Notes: generated by a model from the letters alone, not told the origin. DNA of 64,000 nt from Bugula neritina (GCA_964035545.1 OZ037767.1:7822581-7886580), one strand, 5' to 3'. Shown: positions 7,767 through 64,000, numbered from the stretch's first letter. Numbers and translations: made by a program.

Positions 7767-7767
7767 G

Positions 7768-8484: not shown

Positions 8485-8917
8485 CTTGTTCAACCTTGAA
8501 TAATGCCAACTAATACTATTGCTTTGTTGTACTTTTACAAACACTTGTGTAGTGTTTATATTATTTACCAGTTTTGAAAAAGAAGTCTTTTACAAAATTG
8601 ACTGTAAGGCATGGTGATATTTCTCACAATTGGAAATTTTTTGAGAAGTTATAATTATATTTCTATGTTTACCAATAAAACTAATTGATACAATATTTTA
8701 TATTTTGAACCATTCATTTTTATACAAATTGATTCTCTGAGTTAGATTACTGCCAGCAATTATAAAATTGTTCACAAAGGTACTAAGCTTCCTTACATTG
8801 GTTCAATTGCTCAACACAATGTTCACATTGTGGTAAACTTTCTAGTTACTGACACATGTCATTACATTAATTCTATACCAAGAAAAAGAAATAATCTGAT
8901 AAACTGCACAACTTACA

Positions 8918-13000: not shown

Positions 13001-13093
13001 AGAATACTAGTTAATTTGTCTTATGTAATACTTCCAGTCGGATTTGTTAGATTTAAAAATTAAAAGCCATGTTAGAATAAGTATATTGAATAT

Positions 13094-13410
13094 TTAATTA
13101 GAAACTGCAGCATAAACATGATCTGAAGCAGCTGGTTGATCTATTTGCAGAACTTCATAATTTACATGCTCCTCTTTTTCAAAAGTTGTATTTATGTAAG
13201 TGGGTTGGCAAGCAGTTGTAGCAGACATGATATTAGAAGGTACTTCATAGGCTGATCCATTGTTTCTATCATTCGCAACAGGTGTAGGGAGGCCCAAATC
13301 TTTCATTGAGGCATTCTTTTTTCTTAGCATAATAATTATGCCACCAAATACAATTGCAATCATAAAGGTCAATGATAGGGCTGCTGATAATCCAATCACA
13401 ATAAAAGAGT
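13094..13410 (-). CDS. Gene B terminal exon: TM helix and cytoplasmic tail with four tyrosine motifs
   Basis: [31 protein letters not shown], then YEVP, YINT, VNYEVL, HVYAAV and stop. Confidence 0.85.
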
Positions 13411-16400
13411 CTGAAAATAACAAATTATAAAATGGGAAAAGAATGAACTTGGCTGATTAAACAACCTACTTATATTTACTCTTTAATTAAAGATAAATAG
13501 GTTAAAAGCAATGAACATACTAAAGTTTGCTGATTAAATGACCTACTTATATTTACTCTTTAATTTAAGATAGATTTTCAATAAGTTAAAAGCAATGATG
13601 GCATCCAAAAACAATGCATTTAAAACAACTACCTTTAAATTCATTGCTATACCTATAGTAATCACCATGCAACCAGAATGTTACTATGCAATGTACTACA
13701 AAAATAATATTTAGGATTATAATTATTTAGCTTTCACCCATTTAGGACTATATCTTATATATACAAAAGCTGTCTTACTAGAGTCTTTACAGATCAGCGG
13801 CTCTCCTAACCATTCAGTCATCAACTCAGTATTCACCACACAGTGTAGGTGATGGTCTCCTCCTTCTTGTTCTTTTCCTTTTTCACATTCATAGAGGATA
13901 AACTCCCCAATCTGTACTGAATCTCTTGGAGATGATTTAGTGCCAACTCCAGCTGGTGGGTTTGAGCATGTGGTAAGAGGAACTACAATCAATTGTAATA
14001 TAACAGCTATGTTTGAACGGCAAAAATAGTAAAAAACACTATTGGAATTTCAATATGTATGAAAATAACATGCTTTCTGGTTTGAACATATAGAATGGTA
14101 CCTTTGTGCTATAATATTTATTGAAAGGTTGCAGTAAGACCCTCAGTTTTTGCATATTATTATTACTCTTTACATAAAATCAAATAGTTGTGAGTATAAC
14201 CTATTAGTACCACACAATCAAAAATGCTAACCTTTGAAGCTGTGTCCTTCCCCAAGTAGTTTCACATACTCATCGTCAGAGCCCTGTAAACATAATTACA
14301 TTAAAGTAAAATATATAAAGCTAATACACATTCTCTGACTATAACTAACTTGTTAGGTAGACCAGAGAAAGAAGCAGCTTTTGATATAAAAGAGAGTGCA
14401 GCTGCTAAAGCCGGAAGAACGATTCGTATATCAGGCTACACCGTTTTTACTCCTTAGTGTGACTATATACACAGGATAGTTAAGGGCATCCTCACTAAGA
14501 ATATCATGAATTTCTTTCAAAATGTAGTTTAAGTTCTTGAATAAAATTGCTCTGCGGGGGGGGGGAGGGGGGCATGCATGTTGCCTACTTGCAATTGTTT
14601 AGCCTAAGATTAAACTACAACCAATAATCAGCAACCTTCATTAACTTTCTAATGCCTAATTATTGTGATTGTTGCTAAAGCTTCAAGTGCAATGAAATTT
14701 TTATGAAATATGCATTCCGGAGTTATATTACTATTGTTACCATTTTTTCGTTTTATAATAATACCGATACTAGAAATTTATTGTTCAAATTTCGGGTCTT
14801 CCTAAGTGCAAACCCCTCCCCCCAATTTTCGGACAACAAAGGATATTTTGTGAGCGTGTACTTTGTTCTGTTTGTATAAAAGCAGGTGAGTTTCCAATGT
14901 AGATTCAGTCTACCACTGGAGCTCGACTGTTGAAGACTACTCTATTACACTACAATAAGGATTGCTACTACTGAAGAATACCATCCATCTTGTTCTTTCT
15001 TACAAAGAGATATTGTAGTAACTTGTGGGTAATTGAATGAAATCAGGCGGGGAACATATTTCCTTGTTATAGAAGAGACAAGAGAGAGAATTGAAATAGC
15101 GGTGTGTGCTGTATCTTTATTGTATCTTTGATCCTTCAAGTTCGAGCTACAGTCCTCAAGTGAATGAAGCTCAAAAATAGGTTTCCTTTTATACTAGCCA
15201 GACATAGGAACTCTAGAACCTTCTACCGACAGTAGGCAAAAGCTTGGTAGGGTATGGTGACATTTGTCATGTCAATAACCGACAGACGAATGTCGGCATC
15301 CACTTGCCAAACTCAGTCCAGCTGTCGCTTCACATGAATCAGCAAAAATGAACCCAACCAAGTGTATGCCTATTGTAACTTGGGGGAAGAGAGATTAACT
15401 ATTTACTATGCTGAAGGCTTAGCAATAGCCATAGTTTTTAAGGTGTTAGAGAGTTATGCCACACACTTAGCTATAACTACAGTATTTAGAAAATAGCCAT
15501 AAGTAATGTCTCAAGGGAGACAACTGTGATGTTTACCACAATATGTTCAGCACTTAAGTTTTATTCAATCCACAAAGTTACTACAATGGTGGCAGCAGTG
15601 GGATTCTGAATAACTAAGTATCACCAAAGAGAACAAAATGGCCCAAGGGGAAAAAGAGAGGACAACCCCTGGAGCGCCAGAGACAGTAGCCCACACAATT
15701 GAGGCTCTGGTGACAGCCCTCCAAGAATTACAGGAGACTGGGCAAGCGCCACCTGGTGACAGGTACCACCTCAAACCCTCGATTTTCGGAGGTGAAGGAG
15801 ATGTCGAGCAGTTGATCCTCGAGTTTGAGGATGTGGCCACCATTGCTGAACGGCCAAGAACGGTGAGCATCTTTCATCTCTGGGCCTGTTTGACAGGCCG
15901 GGCCAAGAGTTTTGCACTTGGGCCTGGCAAAGCTCACATCATGCAAGCTTTCAGGGCCCAATTTGGCCTAACGACCGAGGAGGCCTCAGACCAACTACAA
16001 GCTACGAGAAGGGATCGGAGGATGCTTTTGCAAGACCACGCTAACGCGGCGAAACAATTGGCCCAGGCTGCCTTTTGGTTAGGCCACAGGTGCCGAACAA
16101 TGCCTGCAAATAGAGAAGCGGGACGGGGACCCGTTCGCCTTGACGTGGAGACAGAGCTAGGGCAGGCCATCTTTCGACCAAAACCCACTCATTTTGGTCA
16201 AATATTTAAGTTTTGGTAATATTTCAATTTATTTTATTGAACGCTTACATTTCTGTCACATGGACCCTATTTTTGATATATAATGTGGAACATGTATAGT
16301 AAAGCCATTTATGTGGTTTCTAATATCTTGTTACTGCACCTACCCCATATCTACTGTACATTAAAAACTTATATCTAGATTATAGCATTTGTTGTAAATA

Positions 16401-19400
16401 TGGTGCATGTTTGAGCTGATGCCTTGCTATAAACTTGCAAATTACACTTTGAAACGTGCTGCAAAAGCTTCAATTTTAAGCTAAAACAGAAGATAATTTT
16501 GACTCGGGAGGGCTCTCCTCCGGCCCTCCCGCACCCTCTCAGGCGGCCCATTGTGCGGGCCAGAGTTGTCCTTCCTATTGTCTCAGAGTACCAGTTGATA
16601 AACTTTTCATACCAACACGCCACTGGTCACTGCTGCTGGTTTTCTTGATTCTATTGGCTCTCCTTCTTTTGCTTCAGCCATCCTGCTTTGCTATTCTCAT
16701 ATGCAAGCCTACTTAATTATTCTGAAACTCGCCGCTGCCACCAATGTACTGACTTTTTTGGGTAGAAAGCAATTAAGTGGGGAGCGTACCTCCGCAGTAT
16801 AAGAAACAAGATAGCTTGTCCATGTTGAGTAGAATAATCTTTATTAAGTGCTATGAATTTATCTGGTTGTCTTCACCCAGCGAGCTCGGGTGGAAGACCG
16901 ACCCTACTCTATAACTATCTTCGCCTAACAAAATACTAAGAAATAAAAATAAGTTGAATGTTCAAAGAACACTTTTAGAAAACAGAATGTATGATTTCCT
17001 ATCTTCCCCTTCATAGTTTTCTAAATAAAAAGCAAAGTCTAGATTACAATCAAAAAGAATTGCCTGTAAGCCCATAAGTGTGTTTAGAATTGTATATATA
17101 GTAATTTGCTTACACTGTGATAACTTACATGGGGCACCCAGGTAGTAGCCATCCACACATCATAGTCTGCTGCCGAAGCCAGGTTTGTATTTGTGTAGCC
17201 ATTGTAACTTTTTCCATCTCCAACAGTGAACTCATATCCACCAGGGGTATAGACCTTTGTGTCATTAGCCAGTATCTCAGCTGTTACGTAACAATTTTGA
17301 GTGAGAGTAAGACTTGCTCTAGATACTGACTTGGAGTGAGAAGATTGAATACAGTTGCTACTAGATACAGCTCTTTTACTCCTGGTCTTTCTTTGAACCA
17401 GTATCAAGTAGGACCTGCAGCAAATGTTACCCAAAAAAATCATTTACCCGAACTATTTATTATGTGGTTTGTCTGACAAAAATGTGGCTGGTCAGTAACA
17501 AGAGACGAACTTGTGAAAAAGTATAAAAAAGATTTTGCAGAGTTGCTTATAGATTACAGATGTCAAAATTGGTAGATCTTATAGCTGAAGCTTTAGTTTC
17601 AGCTTCTTTTCTGCAAATATAGCCAAAAAGATCTTGATATAGTTATTGCAGAGTTATGCAATTAAATTTGAAAAGCCAGACTCTTTCAGTAAACTGGCAT
17701 CTGGAAATGCAACTTTGGTTGAAACATTGAATTAAATCAAAGAATTAACTGGACATGCTAATTAATCATCTGGTGACCACCATATTGTTTGACTATTATA
17801 CAAAGTATATCTTGTACAACCTTGCAATTCTGGTAGTCAAAATGAAATACTAAATAATTATACCTTATTTTAACAACCTCTTGCTGAAGTGGTAAAATGA
17901 TAACTGTAACTTTTCCTGAACACACCACAAGCTTGGTAAACAGGCTCTGATTCTTGACTAAAATTATTATTCAATTGTTAAAAAAAGTGAAACATAAACA
18001 GCTTCAGCGAGTGAAAAGTTATAATATTTAGAAAACAGTATAAAAAGAGCTGAAATAACTACGAAATTGAAGCAGTAATCTAATTGTCATTTGTCAACAT
18101 AATCGCCTGTTTGAAAAGTTGATAATGCTGATAAGACCAATTGTAGTTTTAGAAGAGCTCTGTGATCATGTTTACTTACTTATAAACTTTATTACCAATA
18201 AATTTCACTATAGAATGTTGTGGACTTTATTAACTAATGTTGTGACAAAACCAAAAATTCAAATCCGGCTGCATTTGGATATGTAGCCTTTGGTAGTGTC
18301 TAGAATAAAAAATTTAGGTTATTATTGCAGAGCTGCGCTTGTAATGTCACAATAGTTGTATTTATAAAAAAAAAGAATTTTACCATGATATGTCCTATAT
18401 AGTGTTTTAATGAGGGAGCAGCTGTGGTCTAAAGGTTAGATAGTCTGCTTAGTAAGCAGTGAGTTATGGGTTCGAGCCCAGACAAAGACCATTGGTGATG
18501 TTAGGAGGAGCATCTAGCCATAATTGCTCCCTATCTAAATGAGTACATAGCCTGATTTAACAAAAAACCTTTCTATCAAAGTTTTCTCACAGGGATGGCA
18601 ACTATAAATTCTTGTGCAAGTTTAAAGTGTTTTGATTGTAGTTGAAATATTTTTTGGACAAAACAAATCATAAACAATATGTTATTTACTTTGCTATGGG
18701 CTTTGTACTTCCTGATGGTTACTAGTTCTTTGAATAAGGTTGTTATTTATTATTGCAGAGCATAACAATTAGTCCCAAAATTTAAAAAGAAGTTTTGAAG
18801 AATATTATCCCACAATATTAAAAATTATACGAAATGGTAAGTTGAATTGAAATGTAATACTAACTGATGAATTCAGTAACAGTAGTTGCTGGTAGACTGG
18901 CAGGACTTGGAGCATATACTGAACCAGCTTGAGCTGTGCATTCTATCACAAAAGCAGACGCTATATTACATATAGAAGTCTTTTCTTCACCCTGATTGGT
19001 TGATGTGAAGTTGACTAATGGTATGACACCAGCTGTATTTTTGTAGTTACATTCAATCTAAAAGATAAAGCATTTCATACAAAATAATTATGCATTGACA
19101 ATTTCATGATTTTTATCTACATTAGTAAACCAGCTATATAGCTACAACTAGCTGACCCATCAATGCAGTTTCAAGATAATAAGCAGTCTTGTATACAGTT
19201 TTGGAAATATCTTGAAATAGATTACTGTCAGAAGAAAATCATAGCACCAATCACTGTTTGTTGTAATTGTAGTTAAACTCACTAAATAATAAGTAGTTAC
19301 TCCTGTGTATTCTCTAGGCTTGTTTAGAGATACATTTATGCAGTTTTCTTCCGATGATTCCAAAGCAATACTGGGTGGAGTTGTTGGTTCTACAGCAAAT

Positions 19401-22400
19401 TACAAAATAATAGAAAGTAATATTTCATTTATTAATTTAGAGTAAAGACACAATTTTGATACATGTGAATAAACTAAATGCTAGTCTCTGAGTATATTCA
19501 TGCTATAATTATTGGTGAATTTCAACTGTTTGGTTAATTTCTTGAGAAATAATTATAATATTGTGAATTTAAAAAAATGTTTGTACCAATATTTCCAGTC
19601 ATAACTGTCAGTTCTTTGGTTAAATTTTTGTTTTGTTCATTTCTAGCCTCTACTTCAAACTGGTAGCTGGTGTTGGCCATCAGATTAGAGAAAACATTCT
19701 GTTTACTGAACCCTGGCTGAGGAGAACTTTTCATCCTGAAACTCAATTCTGTTGTACCATTTGGCCCACACCCACTCAGGAGGCTCTATTAGAAAGTCGC
19801 AAAACATTGCATACAGTATGTAAAAGGGCATAAGATATTACTGACATTTAGCAAGGTTTTTATTGCCAAAATGACATTAATATAGAAATAAAAAATATTA
19901 TGCAATGTACAAATCAGTGAATGAGCATACCTGGTTTTTAACAATTATTGTAACCTCCCGGTAACTGTTCCAGTTATTTTGATAAACATACTCATCTGTA
20001 TAATCTATTTTTCCCACAAACTCTGGTGCTGAAAGAGAAGTGTCACTAAACACATGTGAAGATGTTGTGATGCACTTGAAGGTTCAACCTGTAGACTTAT
20101 GGTACATTTTTATTGCTCCTTCTTTATAAAATTGCTGTGTAAGCTTAGTGTCAAAAGAACACACGTACAAATGATATAACATCACATATACGGTATCTTA
20201 TAGTAACAATGGCACCGGTAAAATGGCCCAAGTAAGAATGGCATAAAGCATGGTAAAGTAGGTACAATGACACATTTTTAAAATATGGGCTTAAGATCAG
20301 ACTGGGTGTTTGGGATAGGAGTTCAGGTTTGAAAATAGGGGTTTGAGTTTGGAATTGGTGTTCAGGGGCTGAGGGTTTGAGCTTGGGGTTTGAAAATTTT
20401 AATGTTGTGTGCTATTTCTTCCTATACTTTTATTTTTTATTTTAACCTACCCATCTCTTTCTGCTATTATTACTTGTGCCACGTTTACCTAAAATCCATA
20501 TATGCATATATACCAGATGACAAGCAGCATACCTGTACACTCCTTAGTCATTACATGCAGAGAGATAAAAGGTCCAGGACACGTATCAGAATTTTCTGTA
20601 TGATGAGAGACTAGAAATCTGTAACCAGTTCCTGGATTCAACTGAGTGGCAGTAAAATTCACTCTACCATCTTCATTCTCAACATTCAGGTTCATTTCAC
20701 CAGTCAGACTGACTTCATACCTGTATATTGTGAAAAAATACAAAGTAGTTACTGTTATGCATACTTTTTGTTACCATTTTATTGAGCAACAGATAACAGT
20801 TAATATGGTATTAATATTTGTTGGATGTTGATAGAAACATGCTTTTTCACATGTCACATATACTTACTGCAAGTTGCTGTAATGAACTTGAGGATTACAA
20901 TTAAAAATCCAGGGTTGGGATTCACGATTCCATTGACTGAAAGATGCTGTTACAGAAGTATAGTCTGGATATACTATGTCAGCATTCTCTTTTACACTGA
21001 ACGTTGGGATATGATCTACAATATTTCATTAAGTGTCTAAATATAAAGTGGTTTAAATACGTGACTTGACCAAGAATTATCTCAGTTTTTTAATAACTTG
21101 CATAGTATAAGCAACATATTACACTTGAGTAATTTAACATTAGGAATGTATATGTAGATATACATGTATAAAATTTGTGCATTTACAAGTTCAAAGCTTT
21201 TTATTGCTAAACCTAGTAAAAAATCATTACACAATGAAACTTATTAAACAAAGACTATACTTATAATAAAAAGTTATTGATTGAACTGCAAAATTGGTTA
21301 AAAGATCACACAAATAATAGTTTGTAATAATGCTCACTTTTTTAATAAGTGTTGTAAATGTATAGCAAAAAATGCTTAGAGTGAGTCCTGGAACATTGAA
21401 TAACATTTAATTGTCAGATTGCTAGTTAGCATGAGGGTGGTGACAGCTGTTTCCACCAGATGCAAACTACATTTGAAAGCTATTTTGTGTTAATTGAGGC
21501 TAGTAAGTAAATTAAAAAACTGATACAAAAATTCTATGCAATAAAAAAAGTTATATTAATAAGCTAAATACAATAGACTCTGCTCACCATAGCCATATAT
21601 TTCAACTTCTCTCAATGCTACTCCTAGAGCATTATCAGTGAGTATAGCAAACTGTTGTATGTATGGAGATACATTCAAGTCACATAACACATTAAACATA
21701 ACTCCTTGAGCCTTGTAAACATATCTACATCCCTTCCAGTTATTGTTTGACCCAGTGTTTGGTGGTTTGTTTACATCATGTGGGTCTGAGCTGGTCAGGT
21801 AGTACATCTGCTTTAGTCTGTCAGCTATAAATCATGATTAAAATAGATAATTATAAAACCAGTTAGTGACTGAACAATATAACGAATAAAACTGTTGTTT
21901 ATGATTTTAATTTGTACTTGTTCAAATGCACAGCACTTAGTAATGAATATTATCATAATCAAAAAATTTCATTGTGTTGAAATAAAAATTAGTCACAGGT
22001 AGCAATGATTTAATGTTATTCTAATCTCCTTTAAATAAAACCTCATTTCATGCTAGAGTGCTTCTATTCTAATCTAATTTGTCACCAACAGTGGTTGGTT
22101 ACTCAACTAGCTAATAAAAATTATTTTTATTATGAATATTTGCCATACTAATCAAGAAAATTAAAGATGCATAATTTTAACAAGCTACAAATAAGCAGTG
22201 TTGAAATTGCATTAACAATTGTGATGAAAATACATTAGGGTTTGCACATTATTAATATTTGTAGCTTTACACCTGATTTTTAATGCTCAGATTTTTTCAC
22301 AAATATTGCAATTATTTTCTCACCTTCCTCTGCAAAAAAATGCAATGATGACATATACCTAATATAAGGTAGAACTAAAATTGATGAAAATAATAACAAT

Positions 22401-25400
22401 GCAGATATACAACCTATATACTATTTTTGTAATAGCCATTTGTAATCGTTAATCAGTGGTTTTGCAATAAAACTATACAGAGCATAAATTGAATTACTGA
22501 ATAAATTTAACCAGTTCAAAATCTTCTAATTGGCATTATATTAGGCATGACAGTGACAGTTAGAATTATATAAAAGTTAAAAAAAGACAGAAATAATTCG
22601 TCTTATGGAGCACCAGTCCACTTATAAGTTCCAAGATAATATCAATTCAGTTTAAAAGAGGTAGTTAAAGATTTATGGAAGGCCAAAATTATTCTCCTAA
22701 TTGCTGCTTTGTATATTAGTTATTATGCTAACGTTACTTTTGTTATTAGTTTAAAATCATACCACAAGGGTTTCCATTACAGCCACCATCTCGAGCATAT
22801 ATTCTGGCAAATTGGAAAATGATTTTTCTCCCCAAGTCTACTTTCCACCATTCACTGGCTTTAGACTGTCCTGTGTTAGAGTAACTACTGTCTATTTTAC
22901 CATCAATAGCAACTTCAGCAGACCAGTTACTATCACCTCCTGTATAAGTTGACTCCTGATAGGCTGTGCCTTTAGTAGCATAATTTATTCCTGAAATCCC
23001 AAACATATTATGGCATTGTATGAAAATATGCATGCATGCAGTGCATGAAAATGTTAGCCGACAATTCTTAGACATTAAAGTCTTAAAGTCAATGTTGTAT
23101 CAAAAATATGATATATATTATGCAAAAGGTTGCAGGACAATATTACTATCACAAGAGAATATGCATGTCTGGTGCGATCAAAATTGCATTTTCTATTTAA
23201 GCTATGGCCATGCAATATTCATAAAATTTGGTTGGCAATGAGTTTTATTATTTTTAATAGAATAGTTGGTGCCAGAAACAATAGGCTAATTCTTTGCCAT
23301 TCAATGATTTATGAAAAATTGGCACTGAACCTAGCTTTCTAAAATTGCATGTCTCCTTTGAGCAATAATTAAAGGTAATCTAATATGAAATAGTAGAATT
23401 AACTAAAGTAAAGTTTATGTACCAAAGTTTTCTGTAGACTAGAATTAACAATGAAAAAAAAAAGGTCTCTTTTACTATTTTTTTTAAGAATTTATTGGAT
23501 CTCTTATCCAATGCGTGATTACTTTGTATAAGAGAAATACCTATCAGGAAAATCATTGTTGCAATAATAATCTTAGTAACACAATACGGTAGTTATCAAA
23601 GCAAATTGATGTTTGAAGAAAATTAGCATTTTTTTTTGTTAGAATAAAACTAGCCTCTAAATATTGGCTGGATAGGGTTTTGCAGAATTGAAAAAGGATA
23701 AAGATTTACAATGTAATAAAAACATCGAAGTTTTAAAAACACATTTAAACAAATTTTTAATATTGAAAGAAGTCTAGGGATTGTTTCAAACATTTTTACT
23801 TCAATGAAACATGAGAGCTTTTGGAAAATGCTTTGTTGAAAATTCAAAAAAAGAGCTTTTCGACAAGGCTATTGATTGAGCTGCTGTAGCAGTAGCAGAA
23901 AATAACAGGAAAGTCCAATTTAGTTGAAAACGTACTTAATTAGGTGCTGAATGTCTTATAGATGAAACACCGTGAATCCTGCCTATAGCTGTAACTTGTA
24001 AGAATGAAAATGTTACAGGCCATTATCTTAAGACAGTATTTTTATACCTAATTAATTGTAAAACTCACTTTTCTTTGAGAAGATTTGAACTTCTTTGAGG
24101 GAGATAATTCCTCTCTGCTCTCTAGAAACAGCAATGTACTTAAACCTTTCTACATTACTAAATTCAATGACATGGAGATAGTTTATTGGATCATTCTGAG
24201 GAGAGATAACTTCCCAGTCAGATAAGGAGGAATATGAAGTAGTGGATACTGTCTCTTTGTTAGAACCCCACACAGTTATATTTGATAGTCTGTCACCTAC
24301 AATATAATGTCTGCCATACACAACTTATACACTTATAATTTGTTATCATATGTTAAATAGTGTTCAAAATGACAACCACTGTTAGATGCTAAAACTGTAT
24401 TAATAAACTCAACAGTACATTTTCATGCAGGATTAGTGTTCGCAACTGAATTACACTTTATACAGACACACGTCCTACAGTGATGGAAATGGACATTTCA
24501 ACATCATGCAGTTTTGTCAAAAGTAAAAATGACAGTTATGCACAAAAGGTTGAAATATGCTTTTCTATATGTACAGCTAAATGTTAAAGCAGTTTTTAAT
24601 CATGTTTCGTTATTGTAAATGTTTTATATCACAAATGTTTTAAACTTAAAGTTTGATTTCAGAGAAATGAACTAGTAGAGAAACTAAATTCACATAGAAT
24701 ATGTAAGCTTTAGAAAAAGAAGCTACTAATGCAGTACAAAGTTCGAGGAAATCAAAATTCAGCAGGTATTTTAAACAGTCGTGTCTATTGCAGTGCACAG
24801 TATGCAAACCTTGCAATTAAGGACTATGATTTCCCACTTGATTGGCCATATCTTGAAAAATAATAGCCCTACTGACCTCAAATTTTGATATATTTTAACC
24901 ATGGGCCTACCCACACTCTTCCCTCACAATTTCAGAGGTCAAGGTTCAATTATAGCGATTTTGGCCGGAGCTCACTAAAGAGTTATATCCTCCTAGAATA
25001 ATAGTTCAATTCTGCTCTAACTCCATAATTTAAAGCTAGACATATTTATCTAGAACCCCTACCACATTTAGCCTTCTAGGTTTACTAGATAACAAAATCT
25101 ATGCACTTTTCGTCGGAGTTCTTTATTTTTAGCATGCAAGGTACCATGTATTGAGATGATCATATCTTGAAACTATTACATGCACATGCCCAATTCTGGT
25201 AGGGTTGCTAGAATAATAGTTCAATTCTGCTCTAACTCCATAATTTCAAGCTAAACATATTTATCTAGAACCCCTACCACATTTAGCCTTCTAGGTTTAC
25301 TAGATAACAAAATCTATGCACTTTTCGCCGGAGTTCTTTATTTTTAGCATGAAAGGTACCATGTATTGAGATGATCATATTTTGAAACTATTACATGCAC

Positions 25401-40400: not shown

Positions 40401-40403
40401 TAA

Positions 40404-40479
<76 letters not shown>

Positions 40480-44267: not shown

Positions 44268-44378
44268 GTTTGAGTGGTTCAAGTAGTTCGAGTGGTTTGA
44301 GTGGATCTAGTGGTTCGAGTGGTCCGAGTGCGTGCGTGCGTTTGTGCGTGCGTGCGCTCGTGGGCGTGTGTGTGTGTC
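44268..44378. repeat. 9-bp GTTCGAGTG minisatellite followed by (GCGT)n/(GT)n
   Basis: About 7 degenerate units. Confidence 0.85.
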
Positions 44379-45974
44379 TATATATAGACCTACTGTATAA
44401 ATCATATATATATATTATGTATATATGTCAATAAAGAGGTGTTTGATGACAATTAAAGCATGAAAAGACAGAAATGTTTATAAGTTAAATATAGCTATAG
44501 TTTAATTAATTTTATGCTAAACAGTTGAATAATGTTTTTTACTGTCCTATTTCCTTTTATAATTCAATATCTGTAGCACGGAGACTTAAGAATATTTTTA
44601 AATAATTTGTTTACTGAATATTTGGCTTATCAAACAATGCTTTTGATATACACCAAATTTGTTATATATAAAATAAAATAATGTCACAATAGTTCAAGTA
44701 AGTCTTAAAGTGGAAACTCGTGTTGAAACAAAAGCAAAGGAGAAAAAAATTGTTTGATATATACTAAAACTGTATTTTCTTGCAATAAGAAACATATCTT
44801 GTCATTAATTATATACAATATGCTTTCTTTAGGTATCTGAGATTTAGTATTTGTAGCAACAGAAGTTGTCTGCTGATCATAAATAGCAACAAATGCAGCA
44901 CCAGCCAGCTGACAAGAAACTGCTTGCTCTTAAATTGAAGCACAATTTCAAATGGTTGCTGTGTAAAGAGAAAAAGCTATTTAATGCTCACCTTATTGCA
45001 AGGAGGCAAAACTGTGGTGCATGATGGTCACCATCGAGACTTATATGAATTTTCATGTAAAAATACAAATGCTGCAGTAAATAACTTTCCTGAGAATTTT
45101 AAATAAAAAAGTCACCTTCTCTTTAAACTAAACTAACATAAACATAAGCCTATTTTAAACTCCAATTTTCCTTTTGTTAAGTAACACAATTATAGTGATA
45201 ATTACTAATAATTTACAAGCAATGCAACAAAAGGTTTATTCTGCTATGAAATTTTCAAGTAATATTGTAATAAGAATAATTTCAAGCAGTTCAAATGAGC
45301 CTCATTATGTGAAAAGGAAAATTACTACTTTTCATTGCAGAAGTGGTTTATTGTAATTATTTGAGTGGTAATGCTTGTGTAGCGCTATTGTGGAGTTCTT
45401 GCACAAGCTGAGCATATTCACCACAAGGCTCACTAAATTACACTGCTAATTAATACAATGGTAATAACATCGCATAATTACGTGGAAGTAGTAAATGCTT
45501 ATGTTCACATCAGGCCATAAAAACAATTTCTACAATTTCAACTGCTGTTAGAAAAGTAAGCTAGAATAATAATAAAAAGTACATGTCTAGCTCATTGACA
45601 CCGTGTCAATACCAATCTGAGCATTTAATCTCTGTTCTTTTTTGTGCTATTATAGCTAATTATAGTTTGCTTATGTAGGTAATATATCCTACAACAATAA
45701 AAATATCCTCAAAAATTATTTTGAATTTTAAAATACTTGGTTTCTCTACAAGTAGTGGACTAGTGAAGCGTACTTATTGCTGAACGGTTATTCAGTTAGT
45801 GGGAAACTGCAAGAAAGAAAACTATGCAGTAGGGATATATAGAATAATTTAGCTTACAGAGAGATAAAAATAAATTAATATCAGATCTTCTGGAGTAGAA
45901 GCAACTAGGAGCGAATGCACCTTTTTTCCTGACATCACCAAGAAACCTGCTGAGATTGAAACTCATTACCTATC

Positions 45975-46150
45975 ATAACTATGATCTAGTTTGGCCATGA
46001 CCTAGTTTGACCATGACCTAGTTTGACCATGACCTAAAATGACTGTGTCCTGTAATAACTATGACCTAGCATGATCAAACCTTATTCTAATCATGACCTA
46101 GTTTGATCATGACCTAGAATGATTAGAACATAGCATGACCATGCACGACT
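45975..46150. repeat. 15-bp CATGACCTAGTTTGA-type minisatellite
   Basis: Several degenerate units. Confidence 0.85.
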
Positions 46151-54200: not shown

Positions 54201-56169
54201 AGCTCCCGCTGGCACTCACCTCAAAAAATTAGAAATTTCTATTAATCGCTCTGCTTGTAACTGCAGAGTAAATACTATAAATTGCGTCATGCTAATTTAT
54301 TTCTATACCTAAATTTGATGTCGCTAGAGTGCAACAGCATTACACTGCAATGAGCATAACATAATAGATCTTATATTTAAAATAGTGCTTATAAGACCAT
54401 ACCTTGGAAATACTCAAACGTGTTTGTGTAAAGTCTGCCCACGACTCAACAGACTTACTACACACAGTGATGTCTCCAAATTTCTTTGGTTGTTTGTCCA
54501 GAGGCCAGTACTGCTCACATTTGTTCTACAATTCAAACTTCAGTGATGTTAAAAGAATGAAGATATTACTAATTGAAGTGTAAATTCAAAATTTTAATCA
54601 AGAAAAAATTATACTATGACACATGAGTTCAAAACAAGTAAAAAAAAATAATTAAGAATACACCCATGAATTGAATATTTTTTCTGAAACCAACCTTTCC
54701 ACTTTCAACAGCTTTAGTTACCATAACTATAGCACTTGGTCTTTCTTGCCACACCATATACCAGAAGTCATTCACTGTTGCTCCAGTTGGACCTTAAATT
54801 ATTGTGATATTACTAATTGTAATTTTATACTAAGCGTTATTGATACTTGGCAATATTTTAAAATCAATAAACACGATTGAATGAAAAAGTTCAATATTTG
54901 AATATTTGTTTATTACTTATTGGTAATTAAAGTTGGTCAAATTTTTTGTGAGTGTAAGTTAATCAGCGAAGGCATGATTAACAGACTTAATAGAAGAGAC
55001 AAATTCTACATATAGTGCCTGTTTTTCATGTTAAATGGCGTTATTATCATCGTTCAATAATCATAAATTACATACATGTATATATGATAGTAAATAACAA
55101 AACACTGATTAGCTGCAATTTCATCGCAAGTTATCGATACTTATGAAATATTTCTTTCTGGTTTTATTTTGTTCATCATCCACCATTCAAATTTGTCTTC
55201 AAATACTATAATTAAATTTAACCAAGTAACACAAGCATTTTCGTAAACAAAATTTTAATACTTTATAGGCAAAACGTTAAAAGTTTCACAGTCGCGTGAA
55301 ATCATGTATACATACGATACATACCACTCCATATTATTCTAGCTAAGCTTACCTTGTGCTGCAATATATGCGTTTTCTTGGCTGTAACCCTAAAAACATA
55401 AAAAATAAAAATCGAAACATACGTTATTAGGACGAATTAGTTTGGCTAAATAAACTGTAAAGCAATGAATTATTTTGTTATAAACAGTGTAATGCACATA
55501 AGTATATTATTCCCAACTACAGCTACTATTTTTGTCAGTTAAACTATTTTTAAAATTCGGAAATGTTCTGATATTTACACAGTTTATGTAAACTTGGAGT
55601 TACCATTTTTTGATGTTTTAGCTGATCGATTGATATTTAGTTTTGAAAAAAATAGTCACTTCCTGTTTGACAATTTCTAGTGCTTGACTAAAAATAATTT
55701 ACAGATGATAACAAATCAAATGATAACCACTAAGTAAATAGACATCAATAAAATAAAACAGGAAATTGTTTACTTATACTGCAGTACCTTGTAGACTGTA
55801 GTAAAGCAAAAATATTAATCTTATTCAGCAGGAAATGCCAAATCAACTTATAAACCAACTTAGAAACATTCTTAAAGCTCAAATAAACTACAAATGTTCA
55901 GTATTGTAAATCCCCATGCACATTTATTCCTGCATTGTGCAGACTCTAATTTCCAAAAATTTTCGATTAGCAAACATGTTTCTAACAGACTACTTTGTTA
56001 AAACCTTGCCGCCCGAGTATTATTAATGAAATGTACTGCTATAAGAACACAATTATTAAATCTTACTGCAATAAAAGAAGCATTTATGAAATCATTTCCT
56101 TCTCCTTCTCTTCTCAGCACAACTCTGTGATTGTCAGCTGAAAAAAAATAGAGTGTATATATTAACATA

Positions 56170-56209
<40 letters not shown>

Positions 56210-59200
56210 AATATGTTTACGATGCACTAAATCACCTCAATGATTTTCTTGAGGACAATTAACCAAATTTCAAAATAATATTTTTGAAAAAACAAAGTTT
56301 ATAGCACTTTTTCTTTAAAAATTGTTAGTGCAGCTTGTTCTGGAATATTTCAACATCTATGCTAAATTAATTAAAGTTACTATAATATTTACTCAAAATT
56401 GTATTAAAAACACCAAAGTCAAGTGATTCTTTAAAAGAATATTGTGGGAAACACAAATTTTTGTACAGTAAAACACTTTGGGTAGAAATCTTCGGCAACA
56501 GCGATAATTTAATTAGTCAGGTAACATTTTAAAAATTGATAAACAAGCTAGGTTGGAATTTTTATTGTACTGATTGATGAACTTTGAACAGCCATTTTTT
56601 CAACATTAACTAATTCTTGCCTAAATTTTCGCAAAGAATATAATGAAACATGATTACATTTTTCTTATTGTATAATAATATTATAGTACAATAGAAAGAA
56701 TATAGTTTCTAATTGCTCAGAATTTCCTTTTATTCGTAATATTTTTCCAGGGAAGTAATTATTTGGCTGTTGAACAACCTTTATATCAAAACTAAAACCT
56801 TTTTTTACAAAGCTAGATCTGTCAGCCTGAATTTTAAATAGGGTTAATATGCAATATACAGCAAGAGTTTTACTTGGTTAATGTATAACATATGAAAATT
56901 TGCATCATGATATTATATCGTTCAATAACCACTCAGGAAAATGTCTAACAGTTATTCCTTTTCTACTGGTTAACTTAGCATTCAAAATTTAAATGAAACC
57001 AGTTTGCGCATCAATAATTTTGAATTGTGTTATAGCCTGCCACTTTAATTATATTACATATTTCTAGTAGCTGCTTCCAACATTGTATGAAAAATTTTTA
57101 CCAGGATAAAGTAGTTTGTATCTACACTTTCCTCTATTGTGAGGCATTAAAGCAACTTCCATTTTTGGTTTTGGCAGTGCTTCCAATTTCTGCAATTTAT
57201 AAAGCAATGATATTTTATTTGATTTACATCAATTTTAAACAACAAGCATTAAAATATAATTTCATAGTATGATTTGTCAAAGTTTTTTCTAAAATGAAAT
57301 TTAGCAATAACCCAAAGAAATTGTGAATCTAAAATAAACTTACTATTTGAAGCTTACCGCCAGAAAGTTTGACAAGATTTAAGTGGTAACTAACTATAGC
57401 ACAGTTATTTGCTTATTTGCAAGTGACTGCAATAAAATTAAAATCACTTATAATTTAATTACATGCATAAGTGTAGTCTTTATGCAGAAATGACTAGAAA
57501 TATAGTTCAACCATGCAGTGGTTGGTTTTCTTTCAAGAGTTTTTAGTTTGTAAGCCTTGCCATTGTGTTCTTTAAACTGTTTAAAAGATAAAATTTGTGT
57601 ACCTATAAATATACATAATTGCTTTAAAAAGAGTGAAGTGTTAAATGTTACCAAAATATTAGCAAAATAAAGCAGGTGAAAACAGAAAAAAATAAAAACA
57701 GAACTAAATATAAAAACTGTAGATAACTTCACTTTTGCCATCAATAAGATAAAAGGCAATTTGGACATATGTAATTAATAAAAAACTTTATACTGCAATT
57801 AAAATATGACTAATATGTCCTAATTCAGACAATACAATAACATACACTTTAGTAAAATAATCACCTACCTCAAACTGTGTTTTCATCAAGCCAACATTGT
57901 TAATAATAAAAGTTCTGAGTTCTGTCACAGGAATTCTGGTAATATCAGGTGGTAAGAGTTCTTCTACATTTTCATATTCAGCTCCTTTAGAATATGATAT
58001 AATCATACAATTTTAAAAACAGACAAACTCAGAGCTACAAGAAAAGCTAAAAAGAAATATTTATTTTAAATAAAATAATATACTTTTGAACAAACTATAT
58101 GTACAATAAAAAATATTACTATAACAAACTTGAAAGTAATAATTAGCCTGAAGCAGAATATTTGAAGAGTACTACCAACTACCTTATTAGTTTCAAATAA
58201 AATATATTGCAGTAGAATGTAGCATCAAACTTTGATCAAAAACTATATTTAAACTTGTATTAGCTTTTTGTTCCAATAAATACTATGCTGCTGCCGATTT
58301 GGAGAATTGGCTGTGTTTTAAGAGCTAAGAGTTTATAAAAAATGTATAATATTAGGGTTTTCCAAAAAAATATTAGTTTTAAGCACCAAAGCACTTAAAA
58401 TAAAATGGCTGCAGTGTAAACTAAATTTTCGAAACTGCTCACAAAATTTTTCACAAAAAATACTATTTAAACTTTGAAAAATAGAAATTTTTACTAGGCC
58501 TTGTGAAAACAGCTATATAACTCATCATTGTAAAACTTGCATAAATCTAACAAAACAATACATAAGTTAAGCTCACCAGGAAAAAATGCCATTAACACAG
58601 ATCGATATTCATTAACAAGTAAGTGTAGCGAACTAGGCTGGGATTTGGGCAATAAATCCTTACTGATGTCTTCAATTGTATTATTATTCTAACCTTACAT
58701 TGATTGACATCATTTGACACCTGGTGATATCGTCAAAATTTTTTTGCTTTCTTAAAACTACAACTAGTTTACTAGCAGCAACTATTGCAAAGTCTCAAAA
58801 TTCTTTTAGTTAGCGCTGGCTGCACTGTAGAAAGCTTTTCCTTGTAGGTTCTCAATATCGCTAACGTAGGTAAGCAAACTCACACTAGTTTCACTACAGA
58901 AACATTGCAAACTTAGGTATTGTAGCAAGTCTATAATATCTGATTATTGGCTGAGTTCTCATTTATAGCTAAATGCTAAACAATAAAAAAAATCTCAAAC
59001 AAAAGAGTTAAATGCCATACGGGGATTGTCTCTTCTTGAAACAGAGGAATTTGCACTTCCCGTTGGTTGAAGGTTGGACAGCTCATTGCCACTGCTATTG
59101 TCTTTTTCCCTGCCTAAAAGTGTTTTCCTGTAGTAAAAATTGTAAAAAGTAATTGAGAAATACATTGTTGCTTGAGCTACGATTATTCAGTGTACTATAA

Positions 59201-62200
59201 ACAAAAAAGATGTGATGTATCATGCAATAATTTCACAGAATTGCTAACTTACACATAAAGCAAACAAAGAAAAATCATACAATAATATGCATATTTGTCT
59301 TTGATTTTCTGTCAGGTTTTATTTTGAAGCACTGCCGATCTCACTTAAAAATGTTATTGAAATAAGGTTTGGAACTATATTGTAGCAACAATGCTATAGC
59401 CAGCAAAAACTAGCACTACCAGAGAAGAGTATGTTACATGTTGTAGCAGAACCTATGTGGCAAACAGATTAGCTTTTAGTTAAAATAAAGTTGACAGTTT
59501 TAGCCGGTTGAGGTACTTGAAGGGTTGATTAGCTTTTTTTTATAAAAAATAATATTATGGTCGCACTAAAATGTCCCAACACAGAAACACAATAAAAAAT
59601 CTGCAAGCTTTGGAAAACAATATTGACTTATAGACATAAAATTTTGACCCTTCTCTTAGTCACCCTTGTGTCTAATAGAATGCTTATTATTTAAGTATAG
59701 TTGCACTGCTAGGTAATTTATACACAAAATTTATTTTAAAAAAATAGATTTTTTTTGTATTGAGCTATTAAACATGTTAGACAATTTAAACACAGAAATA
59801 ACTGTTGTATTATATTATTTCAACACAGCAAAAATCGAAATCTTCAAATATATCACATACACAGAAAATGGTACAGCTGATAATGTGTTAAAGAATTGTC
59901 AACCTCATTTAAAAATAAAATTGTACATTATGAATGTTATTTATTAGTAAAAGTTTTAAACTTTTATCTGCTAACAAAACTTTTTTTGAAAACATCTAAA
60001 TTTAATCATTAATTCAACTCCGTTCATTTTAATAGTCTATTCTTGGAAACTTTACTGCAGTATCAATGTTTACCATTCACTACTCAATATATAATTAAAT
60101 GTAACCCAAAATATTATTTAGAAGGTGTTTTGTTGGAGAAAATTTCATATGCGGTCCTGGTAAATAAAACTAATGATAACAGCAATATTACTTGCAACTT
60201 GTGTTTAATGCAGTAGTTACATGTTTAGGGTGTGTCAGTAATATCATGGGATGATGTAGCAATGATATAGTTTATAGCTACTTATAGTAGTTTAGCAATG
60301 GGTTTTATAGCTTAGATGAGTAAAAATGTCATGAATTGGTTTACCTTCTTATTACCACTATGACAACAACAGCTGCTACAATAACAGCCACTACTCCACC
60401 TATAGCTCCTCCAATGAGTCCAGGCTTAGGTGGTTTCGAAGTAGTTGATTGAGAAATAGTCACAGATACTGGCTCAGGAGCTAAAACAGTATAGGTATTA
60501 GCCGTATGCGTTTCTCCCATTTCTGCATTAAAATAAGTATAATATTTGAGTAATGATATAAACCTATATAAAACTCTAACCTTTGAAGCTGTGTCCTTTG
60601 CCAATGACCTTCACAAACTCCTTATCAGAACCCTGTAAAAATAAGTTGCAGCAAAATTTACAACTGCAAAAAGCAATGTGCTTTAACATGTTAGAGAGAA
60701 GAAACTGAACACTAACCTTTCTACTGGAAAATAACGTCAAGCAACTGTAAGGGCTTTCAGATAACAAAAATTGATGAAAATAGTAACAAGTCAGTAATCT
60801 TACTTAGCAATAAAGAAAAATTCATAGTTTTATATGTAGATGTGCATCTTCTCAAATGCTCCAAATAAATACTAGTCATGCCTAGCCCCCCTTTTCTTGA
60901 AAAGACAAGGTTTTGTTTTGTTTTTGCTTTGATTAAAACAATGTTTCAAATATATCTTTGCAATTTTTAGATCACAAAGCAAAATATAGTTGGTTTTTAA
61001 CAACTTACATTGGGCACCCATGTAGTAGCTATCCATATATCATAATTTGTAGCCAAAACTAGTTTTGTATTTGTGTAGCCATTGTAACTCTTTCCATCTC
61101 CAACAGTGAACTCATATCCACCAGGAGTAGAGATCAGCTTTGTGTCATTAGCCAGTATCTCTGCTGTTATGTAACAACTCTGAGTGAAAGTAAGACTTGA
61201 TCTAGATACTGACTGGGAGTCAGAAGATGGGATACAGTTACTACTAGATACAGCTCTCTTACTTCTGGTATTTTTTTGAACTAATATCAAGTAGGACCTA
61301 CAAATGTTACACAAAAAATTCATTCACTGGGACTCTTCATTATATGTTTTGTCTGCCAAACATGTGGCTGGTCAATAAAAAGAGGCGGACTCGTGAAGAT
61401 TTTTGGACGACTTCCAAGTGATTCTCACAAGTGTGTGGCCGAGCCTTTAAGTTAATTATAATCACTATGCTTAAGATTCTATGTCTTTGACAGGTTGTCA
61501 CATTACAAATAATTTCAGACACTATATATAGGGTTTATAATATTGTGACAGAAACAACAATGATGCTTTTATTCAAAGTTAAAAGACTGTGCCTATATGA
61601 GATACAAAAAAAGTTTAAGTAGCAGCCATTAAAAATATTCTCTCTAAAACATTCGAAACAACTATTATCCTTTGAATGGTTTACTCTATTTATATGTTTT
61701 AATTGAGTTACTACATTGAAACCTTGAATTATTATGTTAGATACTTTCATGGTGCTTTAAGATTTGAACTTTCTAAACAATATTTCGTTTTGATTTTGAA
61801 ATATTGGCATAATAAATAGGCTGCAGTTACAACTTAAAGAAATCTTGCTTATAGATTCTAACTGTCAATATAGCTTCAGTTAAAATCATATACAGTATGA
61901 AGCGCTCTCACATCAGAACAGAGACCTGTGAATGGCATGCCGCAAGGAGGATCAGATGGAGATTTATGGTTCATAAAGGCATGCAAATCTTTGAAAAAGA
62001 AAGAATGCGACACAGAGACGAAGTTAAAGCTGGCCGCAAGAAGGCTTAGCTCAACAGACACATCGAGTGATGACCTCAAATGCCTCTGCTGTGACCGCAT
62101 ATGCAGATTACTGATAGGACTTAGCAGTCATCAAGCTACTCACAAACAGCTGTAGGCAGACATCATACTCTACTTAGAGGGATAGCAAAGAGAGAGAAAG

Positions 62201-64000
62201 AGAGAGGTAAAATTCTATAGTGTCAGCTTCGTTGCTGCAAACATAACGAAACTATGTTAGTGTAGTTATGGCAGATTTATTTAATTCAATTTGATGAACC
62301 AAACTTTTTCAGTAAACTGGCATCTGCATGGAAATGCAATTTTTGTCCAATCAATGAATTAAGTCAAAGAATTAACTTGATACGCTGAATCACCTGATCT
62401 CCACCATCTTGTTTGAATATTACACTACGTAGGCTACGTCTTGCACAACCTTGTAATTCTGGTAACTAGAATGAAATACCAAGTGATTACCTTATGTTGA
62501 CAATTTCTAGCTGAAATGGCAAAATGGTGACAGTAACTTTTCCTGAAGTCACGAGAGGCTCAGTAAATAGGCTCTGATTCTTAACTAAAATCATTATTCG
62601 AGTTTTAAAGTTATAAGTTATAATTTGAAAAAAGCAACACAAAAAAGCCAAAATTGAGACAGTCATAAAACTGTCATGCACCAACACAATCCCCAGTTTA
62701 AAGAGCGTATTAAAGTAATTGTAGTTTTAGAAAAGCTGTGTGATTGTTTTTACTTTGTAAAATCCTGGGCAAAAATATGTTTCACTATAACATGTTGTGG
62801 TCTTTATGAAACGATGTTGTGACTAAACCAAAAATTCATAGGAGATCACATTTGGATCTTTGGCATTGTGTATTGCTTTGAATAAAAATATTGCTGAGCT
62901 GAGCTTGTAATGTCGTAATTGGTATATTTAAAAAGAAAGATATTTACAATTATAATTGATTGCTATATTGTTTTAATTGTAGTTGAATAGAATTATATAG
63001 TGTGATACTAACTGAATAGTTCCGTAACAATAGTTGCTGGTGGACTGGCTGGACTTGGTGCGTATACTGAACCAGCTTGAGCTGTGCATTCTATCACAGA
63101 AGCAGACGTTAGATTACATATAGAAGTGTTTTCTTCATCTTGATTGTTTGATGTAAAATTAACGAATGGTATAACGCCATCTGTATTGTTGTAGTTGCAT
63201 TTAATCTAAAAGAGAAAGCATTTATTTTACCAATATACTTTGCATTTTATACAAAATAGTTATGCATTGATAACTTTATGATTTTTATCTACATTAGTTA
63301 ACCAGTCATATAAAACTGGCTGACCCATCAATGCAATTTAAAGATATGCAGTCTTGTATGCATTTTTGGAAATGTTTTGAAATAGATTACTGCCAGAAGA
63401 AAATTGTAGCACTAATCACCGTTTGTTATAATTGTAGTTAAACTCACTAAATAATAAGTAATTACTCCTGTGTATTCTTCAGGTTTGTTTAGAGATGCAT
63501 TTATGCAGTTTTCTTCCGATGATTCCAAAGCAATACTGGGTGGAGTTGTTGGTTCTACAGTAAATTACAAAATTTTGGAAAGTAGTCTTTCATATAATTG
63601 AATAGAAGCATAATTCTGATACAAGTGAATAAAATAAATAATAGTTTCTGAATATATTCATGCTATAATTGTGAATTTCAGCTGTTTGGTAAAATTCTTG
63701 AAAACTGAATAATCAAACCATATTTGGGTTTTGACTTTAAAATTGCCATGTTGTTCTTCGAAGCTTATGGAGTTTACAAGTTTCACTATGAGACTGTTGA
63801 AAGTTTGTTTATAGGTGATCTATATACTAAAAGGTTTATAATACAGTTTTTTATATATATTTAATAAAGTGTTCTTACCAATGTTTTTAGTGAAAACTGT
63901 CAGTTCTTTAGTAGAACGCTTGTTTTGTTCATTTCTAGCCTCCACCTCAAACATGTAGCTGGTGTTGGGCATCAGATGAGAGAAAACATTTTGCTTACTG
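48275..64000 (-). CDS. Gene A: receptor-type protein-tyrosine phosphatase with tandem D1/D2 domains (5' part outside the window)
   Basis: Approximate exons: 63879-64000+, 63448-63554, 63013-63205, 62491-62584, 61009-61297, 60581-60632, 60345-60480 (TM), 59021-59127, 57869-57984, 57102-57189 (KCRY), 56067-56137 (DFINAS), 55333-55389 (YIAAQ), 54695-54792 (DFW.MVWQ), 54403-54525 (KCEQYWP), 53544-53692 (WPDHG, IHCS), 52926-53061 (AGVGRTG), 52191-52339, 51684-51780, 51219-51283, 50485-50607, 49737-49859, 49151-49302, 48855-48990, 48275-48349 (FAEYANFN*). Confidence 0.93.
61888..62207 (+). mobile_element. 5'-truncated RTE-like LINE 3' end
   Basis: C-terminal CxxC...[13 protein letters not shown] zinc-finger-like motif, a short 3' UTR and an (AG)n tail; absent from the paralogous gene B intron (about 17560-17600). 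Confidence 0.75.

Follow-up and report, generated by a model that had tools for sequence, protein, structure and literature searches.

A gene cluster in the bryozoan Bugula neritina predicted to encode F-type lectin-headed receptors ending in a tandem phosphatase or in a tyrosine-bearing tail

The window analyzed here is a stretch of 64,000 nucleotides from the bryozoan Bugula neritina (GCA_964035545.1 OZ037767.1:7822581-7886580; G000:C3:7822581-7886580), which is AT-rich, with approximately 30% GC outside transposons. It contains genes of a predicted receptor family, designated A, B and C', which all lie on the minus strand and follow one another in and around the window in the order A (phosphatase type), B (tail type) and C' (phosphatase type). 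The shared plan is a signal peptide, three F-type lectin domains (FTP1 to FTP3), a stalk with FN3 domains, a membrane-proximal domain and a linker exon of 17 residues (GSD...GHSFK). Two alternative endings begin at the phase-1 intron 3' of the linker exon: a transmembrane (TM) segment with the protein tyrosine phosphatase (PTP) domains D1 and D2, or a Sushi domain, a TM segment and a cytoplasmic tail. Gene A occupies 48278-64000, entering the window at 64000 and ending at 48278, and gene B is complete within 13094-42824, from its ATG at 42824 to its stop codon at 13096-13094.

A and B, which a preliminary description of this DNA had taken to be tandem paralogs, are indeed adjacent minus-strand paralogs whose six stalk exons correspond one to one. 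In gene B, the FN3 stalk (17129-21025) comprises E1 (ending at 19587), E2 (19389-19283), E3 (19057-18865), E4 (17957-17864) and the membrane-proximal exon E5 (17414-17129); the linker exon at 14232-14283 leads from phase 0 to phase 1, and the swap of modules takes place at the intron after it. The stalk exons of gene A held in common with B (61009-63999) are E1 (partial, 63999-63879), E2 (63554-63448), E3 (63205-63013), E4 (62584-62491) and E5 (61297-61009), and the last common exon is the 52-nt linker exon at 60581-60632, which likewise ends in phase 1. GT donors are present at all six quoted exon ends in both genes, and the acceptors and reading phases are identical in the two sets of stalk exons; the end placed at 19284 in B lies at 19283. 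The common exons share 70 to 91% identity at the protein level and 78 to 95% at the DNA level, with a ratio of nonsynonymous to synonymous substitution rates (dN/dS) of 0.35 for the stalk of A versus that of B. In a self-comparison of the window, 17122-19708 aligned with 61002-64000 (70 to 85% identity) and 8205-11864 aligned with 40548-44939 (72 to 89%). The claim that the introns also align one to one held for the first four (64 to 86% identity) but not for the last common intron, which is 2,845 nt in B versus 376 nt in A and, at 44% identity, does not align. This intron of B contains fragments resembling long terminal repeats (LTRs) or gag at 14466-14643 and 15565-16219, and the segment 14479-14643 matches LTR ends at 2919-3085 and 34494-34647; these retroelement fragments explain the lack of alignment with the intron of A.

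The membrane-proximal exon passes the Pfam threshold for Fn3_PTPRU (PF23144; cutoff, 24.7 bits) in both genes, with 35.8 bits in B and 36.1 bits in A. Near its start, a furin-like R-S-K-R sequence followed by A-V-S is found at 17390-17370 in B, at approximately 61270-61250 in A and in most paralogs and has been lost in genes D and L. This predicted site may mean that cleavage divides the ectodomain into two subunits or releases it, as happens in phosphatases of the LAR/PTPmu type.

After the linker exon, the two genes diverge as had been proposed, A continuing into a TM segment and PTP domains D1 and D2 and B into a Sushi domain, a TM segment and a tail. In gene A, a single TM exon (60345-60522) starts 58 nt past the linker exon, is entered in phase 1 and left in phase 2, and is followed by an acceptor at 59127; the D1 and D2 exons then follow in order down to 48278, with compatible phases where checked, and span the whole Pfam phosphatase profile twice. 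D1 is encoded by at least seven exons at 52926-57985, which cover positions 13 to 222 of PF00102. The WPD loop lies in the exon at 53692-53546, which has the active-site cysteine as its last codon, and the rest of the signature, [10 protein letters not shown] in full, is read from 53063 on; HC, continued across the exon border by [15 protein letters not shown], and MVQ were read directly. D1 of gene A thus retains the HC-x5-R signature, split by an exon border, together with WPD and the glutamine of the Q loop, and is apparently an active phosphatase. D2 and the C terminus are encoded at 48278-51741, with the stop codon just below 48278; D2 keeps CX5R as C-RDGSK-R and has W-H-D for WPD and K-N-R-F for KNRY. 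Changes of this kind are frequent in regulatory D2 domains. Between A and C', the phosphatase cores have a dN/dS of 0.17, their exons being 96.2% and their introns 86.7% identical, which argues for maintained function of the phosphatase module. The lectin head of A, which the preliminary description had only presumed, was located past the window end: the 5' exons, encoding the signal peptide, three F-type lectin domains and the first FN3 exons, lie on the minus strand at window-equivalent positions 64009-83459 and are 61 to 92% identical per exon to their gene B counterparts.

In gene B, the linker exon is followed, through canonical phase-1 sites, by a Sushi/CCP exon at 13779-13982, which has an AG acceptor and a GTAAG donor and is in phase 1 at both ends. 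The Sushi pattern of four cysteines and a tryptophan is present in B and in all paralogs; the single exon scores 15.3 bits against PF00084, for which the cutoff is 20.7. The Sushi acceptor, the phase-1 GTAAG donor just past the last cysteine and the acceptor of the tail exon are kept in eight paralogs, down to approximately 50% tail identity, and in a metagenome contig described below. The last exon (13094-13410, coding at 13410-13097) encodes the TM segment at approximately 13405-13325 and a cytoplasmic tail of 76 residues with four tyrosines. The TM segment of B contains no charged residue and the tail bears its own motifs; the absence of such a residue means that the receptor does not look adaptor dependent.

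The 5' part of gene B (38675-42824) encodes a signal peptide (42824-42749), FTP1 (41999-41796 and 41607-41380) and the first half of FTP2 (38908-38675), with all junctions in phase 1. This region, at 42.8 to 38.6 kb, had previously been interpreted as a third gene copy, but it is the 5' end of gene B itself. All lectin domains of the family are split at one and the same place, and B has two orphan FTP2 halves with matching phase-1 sites, the second of which (24296-24069) opens the block 21588-24296 that also encodes FTP3 (22990 to approximately 22763 and 21824-21588). The two FTP2 halves are only 1.2 to 1.5 kb apart in paralog E and in C'. The orphan halves, their phases and these two paralogs together indicate that gene B spans 42824-13094; a separate, truncated lectin gene was considered for the upstream part and rejected on the grounds of the half-domain exons, the phases and the two paralogs. 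The FTP2 halves of B are separated by an intron of 14.4 kb (24297-38674) because a broken Mutator-like DNA transposon (approximately 25208-28000) and a fragmented antisense LTR retrotransposon (approximately 28000-35224) occupy it. The Mutator-like element (25208-28000) is present in at least eight copies with 92 to 93% identity on six chromosomes, an identity that suggests fairly recent activity of its family, and the region also carries a 220-bp tandem duplication at 24993-25427. No stop codon or frameshift was found in any recognized exon of gene B. In the intron between lectin domains 1 and 2, an open frame of 252 residues on the plus strand (39257-40015) has no Pfam match and is flanked by long microsatellites of the TA/TATA type at 38926-39077 and 40390-40508.

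The assignment of the heads to the F-type lectins was borne out by comparison with solved structures, in which the best matches were FBP32, the Streptococcus protein Sm-hPAF and eel agglutinin; exons FTP1a and FTP3a matched FBP32 (E value, 4.7e-07), Sm-hPAF, a fucolectin-related protein and 1K12 in the PDB. The lectin exons score above the Pfam threshold for F5_F8_type_C or F5_F8_type_C_2, and a THT...WW.VDL...NR motif occurs in FTP1 and FTP2. We looked for the sugar-binding triad of a histidine, an arginine and a second arginine or lysine approximately seven residues further on. FTP2 has the histidine together with R-x6-R across the exon junction. FTP1 evolves faster than the stalk, the tail or the phosphatase (dN/dS, 0.48 to 0.67), and its changes cluster at a few hypervariable positions beside the sugar-binding histidine and arginine. 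This pattern is suggestive of changing specificity, short of a formal test.

The tyrosine codons of the B tail lie on the minus strand at 13249, 13198 (YxN), 13159 (V-x-Y-E-V-L) and 13114 (V-Y-A-A-V). The first is not conserved, and the other three are invariant in six distinct tail lineages (37 to 100% identity), in the motifs QPxY[I/M]N, [V/L]xYE[V/P][L/M] and, 10 to 11 residues past the middle one, VYAx[V/I]xN. QPxY[I/M]N is of the Grb2-type YxN class and is the best conserved motif of the tail. The consensus of the ITIM (immunoreceptor tyrosine-based inhibitory motif), (I/V/L/S)xYxx(I/V/L), is matched by V-N-Y-E-V-L at 13159, with V or L at position -2 and L or M at position +3 in five of the six lineages, and the other three tyrosines of B do not fit it. 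The strict consensus of the activation motif (ITAM), Yxx(L/I)-x6-8-Yxx(L/I), is not matched, since the two motifs are spaced by 11 residues in B, or by 10 in divergent paralogs, and the second of them ends in V or I; the last two tyrosines fit only a relaxed ITAM with x6-12. The earlier label of an ITIM-type tail therefore suits one tyrosine of four, whose agreement with the motif is no demonstration that SHP proteins are recruited, and the other conserved motifs are YxN and a wide-spaced, ITAM-like one. We give slightly less than an even chance to a docking or activating module and a lower, still appreciable one to an ITIM-type inhibitory module. The dN/dS of the tail is 0.10 to 0.34 among close paralogs and 0.19 to 0.26 against the metagenome contig, and such ratios show both signaling modules to be under purifying selection.

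We searched the whole genome using the tail, Sushi, membrane-proximal, D1 and FTP1 exons as queries. The count of copies and tail types beyond the window, which had been left for later work, came to 12 clustered subfamily genes on one chromosome (contig C3), four of the phosphatase type (P) and eight of the tail type (T). Eight form a row on the minus strand, A(P), B(T), C'(P), D(T), E(T), F(T), G(T) and H(P); I(T), J(T) and K(P) are on the plus strand, and L(T) lies at 7.12 Mb. These exon searches revealed no phosphatase remnants 3' of any tail exon and no Sushi or tail remnants 3' of the D2 of gene A. That B is A minus its PTP exons, or that a single gene yields both endings through alternative 3' ends, was considered and rejected, as neither module leaves remnants downstream of the other. 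Outside this assembly, the B. neritina draft GCA_010799875.2 (PMC7576161) contains one contig that is collinear with a cluster gene at 87 to 88% DNA identity, and a predicted gene model of the draft joins the membrane-proximal, linker and PTP-type TM exons. A HMMER search with the membrane-proximal exon returned 10 matches, the close ones being single-exon open reading frames (ORFs) and one B. neritina draft gene model and a remote one being a tick PTPRT-like protein. The corresponding search with the tail exon matched one JGI ORF, and in JGI contigs, among them the metagenome contig L022, the membrane-proximal exon is followed by the Sushi exon and then the tail exon, as in gene B.

Related modules also occur elsewhere on the chromosome. 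Just past gene A, two loci (L009 and L010; G000:C3:7914909 and 7941915) contain a TM-plus-tail exon of 37 to 40% identity with all three conserved tyrosine motifs, which directly follows FN3-like exons and is accompanied neither by a Sushi exon nor by a matching stalk. Their sequences indicate that the TM-plus-tail module serves more than one receptor family. Downstream of J and I, the loci L011 and L012 (G000:C3:8095075-8095633 and 8067515-8068085) show a further Sushi exon, interrupted by three stop codons, and a truncated tail exon without the tyrosine motifs; these are decayed duplicates of the module.

The actual third gene is C', which is of the phosphatase type and starts at 10043, outside the range covered by the preliminary description. 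Its 5' exons lie at 8876-10043 on the minus strand, with the ATG at 10043 and FTP1 at approximately 9537-8876. The gene is interrupted by an LTR retrotransposon (approximately 2000-8000) and runs off the window; a full set of PTP D1/D2 exons, which matches A exon for exon, is found at window-equivalent positions -15.6 to -25.4 kb. At one locus of C' (L016; window-equivalent -12232 to -12672), the gene appears to be without E4, the membrane-proximal exon and the linker exon, its homology to the paralogs stopping where E3 stops, with the TM exon approximately 370 nt further on. Since the end of E3 and the start of the TM exon are both in phase 1, the frame would be kept, and C' may represent a naturally shorter stalk variant.

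Phylogenetic trees of the two ends of the ectodomain differ in how they sort the types. The FTP1 tree mixes them, at least three changes of tail type being forced by the branches starred in that tree, and it places C'(P) as sister to F(T) with support of 100/98. In the tree of the membrane-proximal exon, the types are nearly separate, which is compatible with a single origin. A near-identical tract of 13.4 kb (8484-21831) is 98.3% identical, and 99.6% identical over its central 7 kb, to G000:C3:7737310-7750664, 94 kb away. The tract runs from lectin domain 3 of B through its tail and the intergenic DNA into the first exons of C', and its counterpart consists of the 3' part of E and the first exons of F; beyond 21831, identity drops to 84%. 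The two copies are most alike centrally (28 differences in 7 kb) and diverge toward the edges (71 differences in the first kb and 44 in the last), and one boundary lies at most 7 nt from the acceptor of the second FTP3 exon (21824). The tract indicates that unequal recombination or conversion exchanges DNA across the borders of genes. These observations suggest that exchange passes heads from tail-type to phosphatase-type genes and that the base of the stalk travels with its signaling module.

We also compared this region with run X1, whose DNA unitigs do not exceed 503 bp on the window stretch and show neither splicing nor long-range contiguity. Over 13050-19049, 78% of sampled words were held in common with the window. 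At 14684, 15637 and 17246-17254, only nonwindow letters were seen, and 14684, 15637 and 17254 are sites at which B and E differ; extra variant unitigs occurred at approximately half depth. X1 probably represents another individual or haplotype. B-specific unitigs occur in X1, and unitigs common to B and E do not reach double the depth of the B-specific ones.

The claim that the same kind of ectodomain is mounted on a phosphatase or on a tyrosine tail stands as regards architecture. It does not stand for A and B as a specific couple, whose nearest relatives lie elsewhere: the nearest ectodomain to that of A belongs to gene H, of the PTP type, and the nearest to that of B belongs to gene E, of the tail type. 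The family nevertheless displays the arrangement by which paired receptors are recognized, namely clustered genes with related ectodomains and different signaling endings. As the best explanation of the data as a whole, we consider it somewhat probable that the cluster encodes a lectin-headed family in which opposed outputs, from a phosphatase or a tyrosine tail, would issue from one recognition surface. The membrane-proximal domain is a hallmark of receptor phosphatases, for which reason descent from a phosphatase-type ancestor is the best reading of the tail type. This type probably arose once, by replacement of the TM-PTP exons of a phosphatase-type gene at the phase-1 intron, after which unequal recombination or gene conversion would have moved lectin heads between types. 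In this scheme, the lectin head would bind a glycan ligand. The tail type would be phosphorylated by a Src-type kinase and recruit SH2 proteins, a Grb2-like partner at YxN and a Syk/Shark-like or SHP-2/Corkscrew-like partner at the last two tyrosines, and the phosphatase type, on the same or a similar ligand, would remove phosphotyrosine locally.

A number of points weigh against this interpretation. The gene models are exons read in genomic DNA, from which splicing and expression are inferred, and the Pfam and solved-structure comparisons were run on single exons, one at a time. Because A and B share 61 to 92% identity per exon and are not nearest relatives, equal ligand specificity is not implied. 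Among the predicted sugar-binding sites, that of FTP1 has the histidine but arginines 10 residues apart, an atypical spacing, and that of FTP3 is without the canonical histidine. The phosphotyrosine loop of D1 reads K-C-R-Y in place of K-N-R-Y in both A and paralog C', which makes the predicted enzyme a variant one. The tail sequence is a clean match to neither the ITIM nor the ITAM consensus, and recent duplication or conversion, instead of selection, could account for much of the conservation seen among close paralogs. Finally, the transposons in one intron of B, which add up to approximately 10 kb, could impair its expression.

Other explanations account for parts of the data. The tail could be ITIM-type and recruit a SHP-2/Corkscrew-like phosphatase, with both types delivering phosphatase activity and the family being purely inhibitory, like Siglecs. 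The V-N-Y-E-V-L motif at 13159, with V or L at -2 in five of six tail lineages and L or M at +3, would suit such a role, and Draper-II is an invertebrate ITIM receptor able to recruit Corkscrew (PMC8092387). However, two of the three conserved tyrosines do not fit, no motif is better conserved than the Grb2-type QPxY[I/M]N, and position -2 of the C-terminal VYAx[V/I] is H, N or D; moreover, two inhibitory arms on one ectodomain would leave no obvious reason to keep both under selection, and we regard this explanation as unlikely. The genes might instead be expanded adhesion or developmental receptor phosphatases with no paired recognition, the tail types being an offshoot with an unrelated job, such as larval settlement, gamete or symbiont contact, or a decoy or dominant-negative role. 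Cell adhesion receptor phosphatases typically have such a membrane-proximal domain and furin-like site, the tick PTPRT-like match points the same way, A and B are not nearest relatives, and the tail also occurs on another FN3 receptor that has neither Sushi domain nor this stalk (L009/L010). We nevertheless hold it to be rather unlikely, since heads have been exchanged between types, head variation lies near the binding site, the genes form a large tandem cluster and both modules are under purifying selection, features which in combination are the usual signature of recognition receptor families.

The remaining two explanations concern the genes as such. Gene B might be dead or silent, through its transposon-filled intron or for want of a working promoter, its frames having been kept intact by recent conversion. 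One of the transposons in the FTP2 intron is in the sense orientation, and since the 3' 13.4 kb of B is 98.3% identical to E, its intactness could be borrowed. Against this, the recognized exons contain no stop codon or frameshift, the splice sites across the large intron are intact and in matching phases, and transposon-bearing introns of such size are common in animal genes; silence of B therefore seems to us quite improbable. That the tandem copies are haplotypes assembled side by side would find some support in the 99.6% identity of B and E over 7 kb, which is within the allelic range, and in X1, which shows the letter of E rather than that of B at 14684 and 15637 and in which unitigs common to B and E are not at double depth. 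On the other hand, B and E are 80 to 84% identical outside the tract and are set apart by 14 kb of insertions, B-specific unitigs are present in X1, and A versus B and B versus C' differ by 12 to 30% and have different 3' modules. As an account of the tandem copies, we hold this to be extremely improbable; such an artifact could touch only the B/E twin, which may not be two loci in every individual. For A versus B, which the preliminary description had named as a possible haplotype duplication, it is ruled out, as exon DNA identity of 78 to 95% together with different 3' modules cannot arise in this way.

The favored reading, of opposed outputs from lectin-headed receptors, can be set beside several known systems. 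The paired receptors of vertebrates (KIR, Ly49, SIRP, PILR, LILR and the Siglec pairs) are likewise clustered, with related ectodomains on different endings and exchange of segments between types. In contrast to these, the "off" arm of the bryozoan family would be a built-in tandem phosphatase and not an ITIM tail, the tail arm bears tyrosine motifs itself and lacks a charged TM residue with which to bind an ITAM adaptor, an F-type lectin stands in the place of the Ig or C-type lectin domain as the head, and ectodomain identity between types is lower (61 to 92% per exon for A versus B). Receptor-type phosphatases whose ectodomain is cleaved (the LAR/PTPRM/PTPRU and PTPRJ groups) have the same FN3 stalk, Fn3_PTPRU/PTP_tm-like domain, furin-like site, single TM segment and D1 plus D2 with CX5R, whereas the bryozoan proteins are predicted to carry three N-terminal F-type lectin domains and have K-C-R-Y for K-N-R-Y. 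We know of no described receptor phosphatase with an F-type lectin head, none was found in the literature searched, and a literature search for a lectin-phosphatase/tail system likewise found no published description. The F-type lectins AAA (1K12), FBP32 (3CQO) and Streptococcus Sm-hPAF are the best structure matches, and FBP32 also has tandem domains; the bryozoan domains differ in being membrane anchored at the tip of a predicted signaling receptor, in being split over two exons each and in the lack of the histidine in FTP3.

Among invertebrate receptors, Draper-I of Drosophila signals via an ITAM and Shark and Draper-II via an ITIM and Corkscrew (PMC8092387). Together with Megf10 and CED-1, Draper resembles the bryozoan family as a single-pass receptor whose tail tyrosines are read by Shark or Corkscrew and in which alternative endings give opposite outputs (PMC8092387). 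The endings of Draper, however, are splice isoforms of one gene, whereas those of the bryozoan family are on separate genes, one of them a phosphatase, and there is no sequence relationship. Hydractinia Alr and Botryllus fester/uncle fester are, similarly, clustered, polymorphic-looking membrane receptors of colonial animals, with ITAM/ITIM-like tails in Alr and Sushi domains in fester. Their domain families differ from those described here, and in bryozoans a genetic link with fusion or rejection is not known. In the B. neritina genome paper, mention of allorecognition-type genes is limited to weak similarities to Alr1 (PMC7576161).

Taken together, the exon-level evidence shows that the gene architecture is real and well supported and that its head is of a kind new to receptor phosphatases; from this we infer the functional reading. 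More tentatively, and as a proposal that we think doubtful but worth stating, the family may provide germline-encoded glycan recognition in a colonial animal, in which lectin heads are recombined and each specificity is made in an "on" form, with a kinase-recruiting tail, and an "off" form, with a built-in phosphatase, as an independent counterpart of the vertebrate paired receptors for self/nonself, symbiont or pathogen discrimination. If the two types are coexpressed and have related ligands, paired on/off logic would have arisen independently in a lophotrochozoan, with the inhibitory enzyme built in rather than recruited by an ITIM. The family would, if this is true, also offer a direct handle on which cue from outside the cell controls a receptor phosphatase, a question that has long stood unsolved for these enzymes. 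For bryozoans, these are candidate genes for colony fusion and rejection and for recognition of the bryostatin-producing symbionts, roles that have so far been without molecular candidates.

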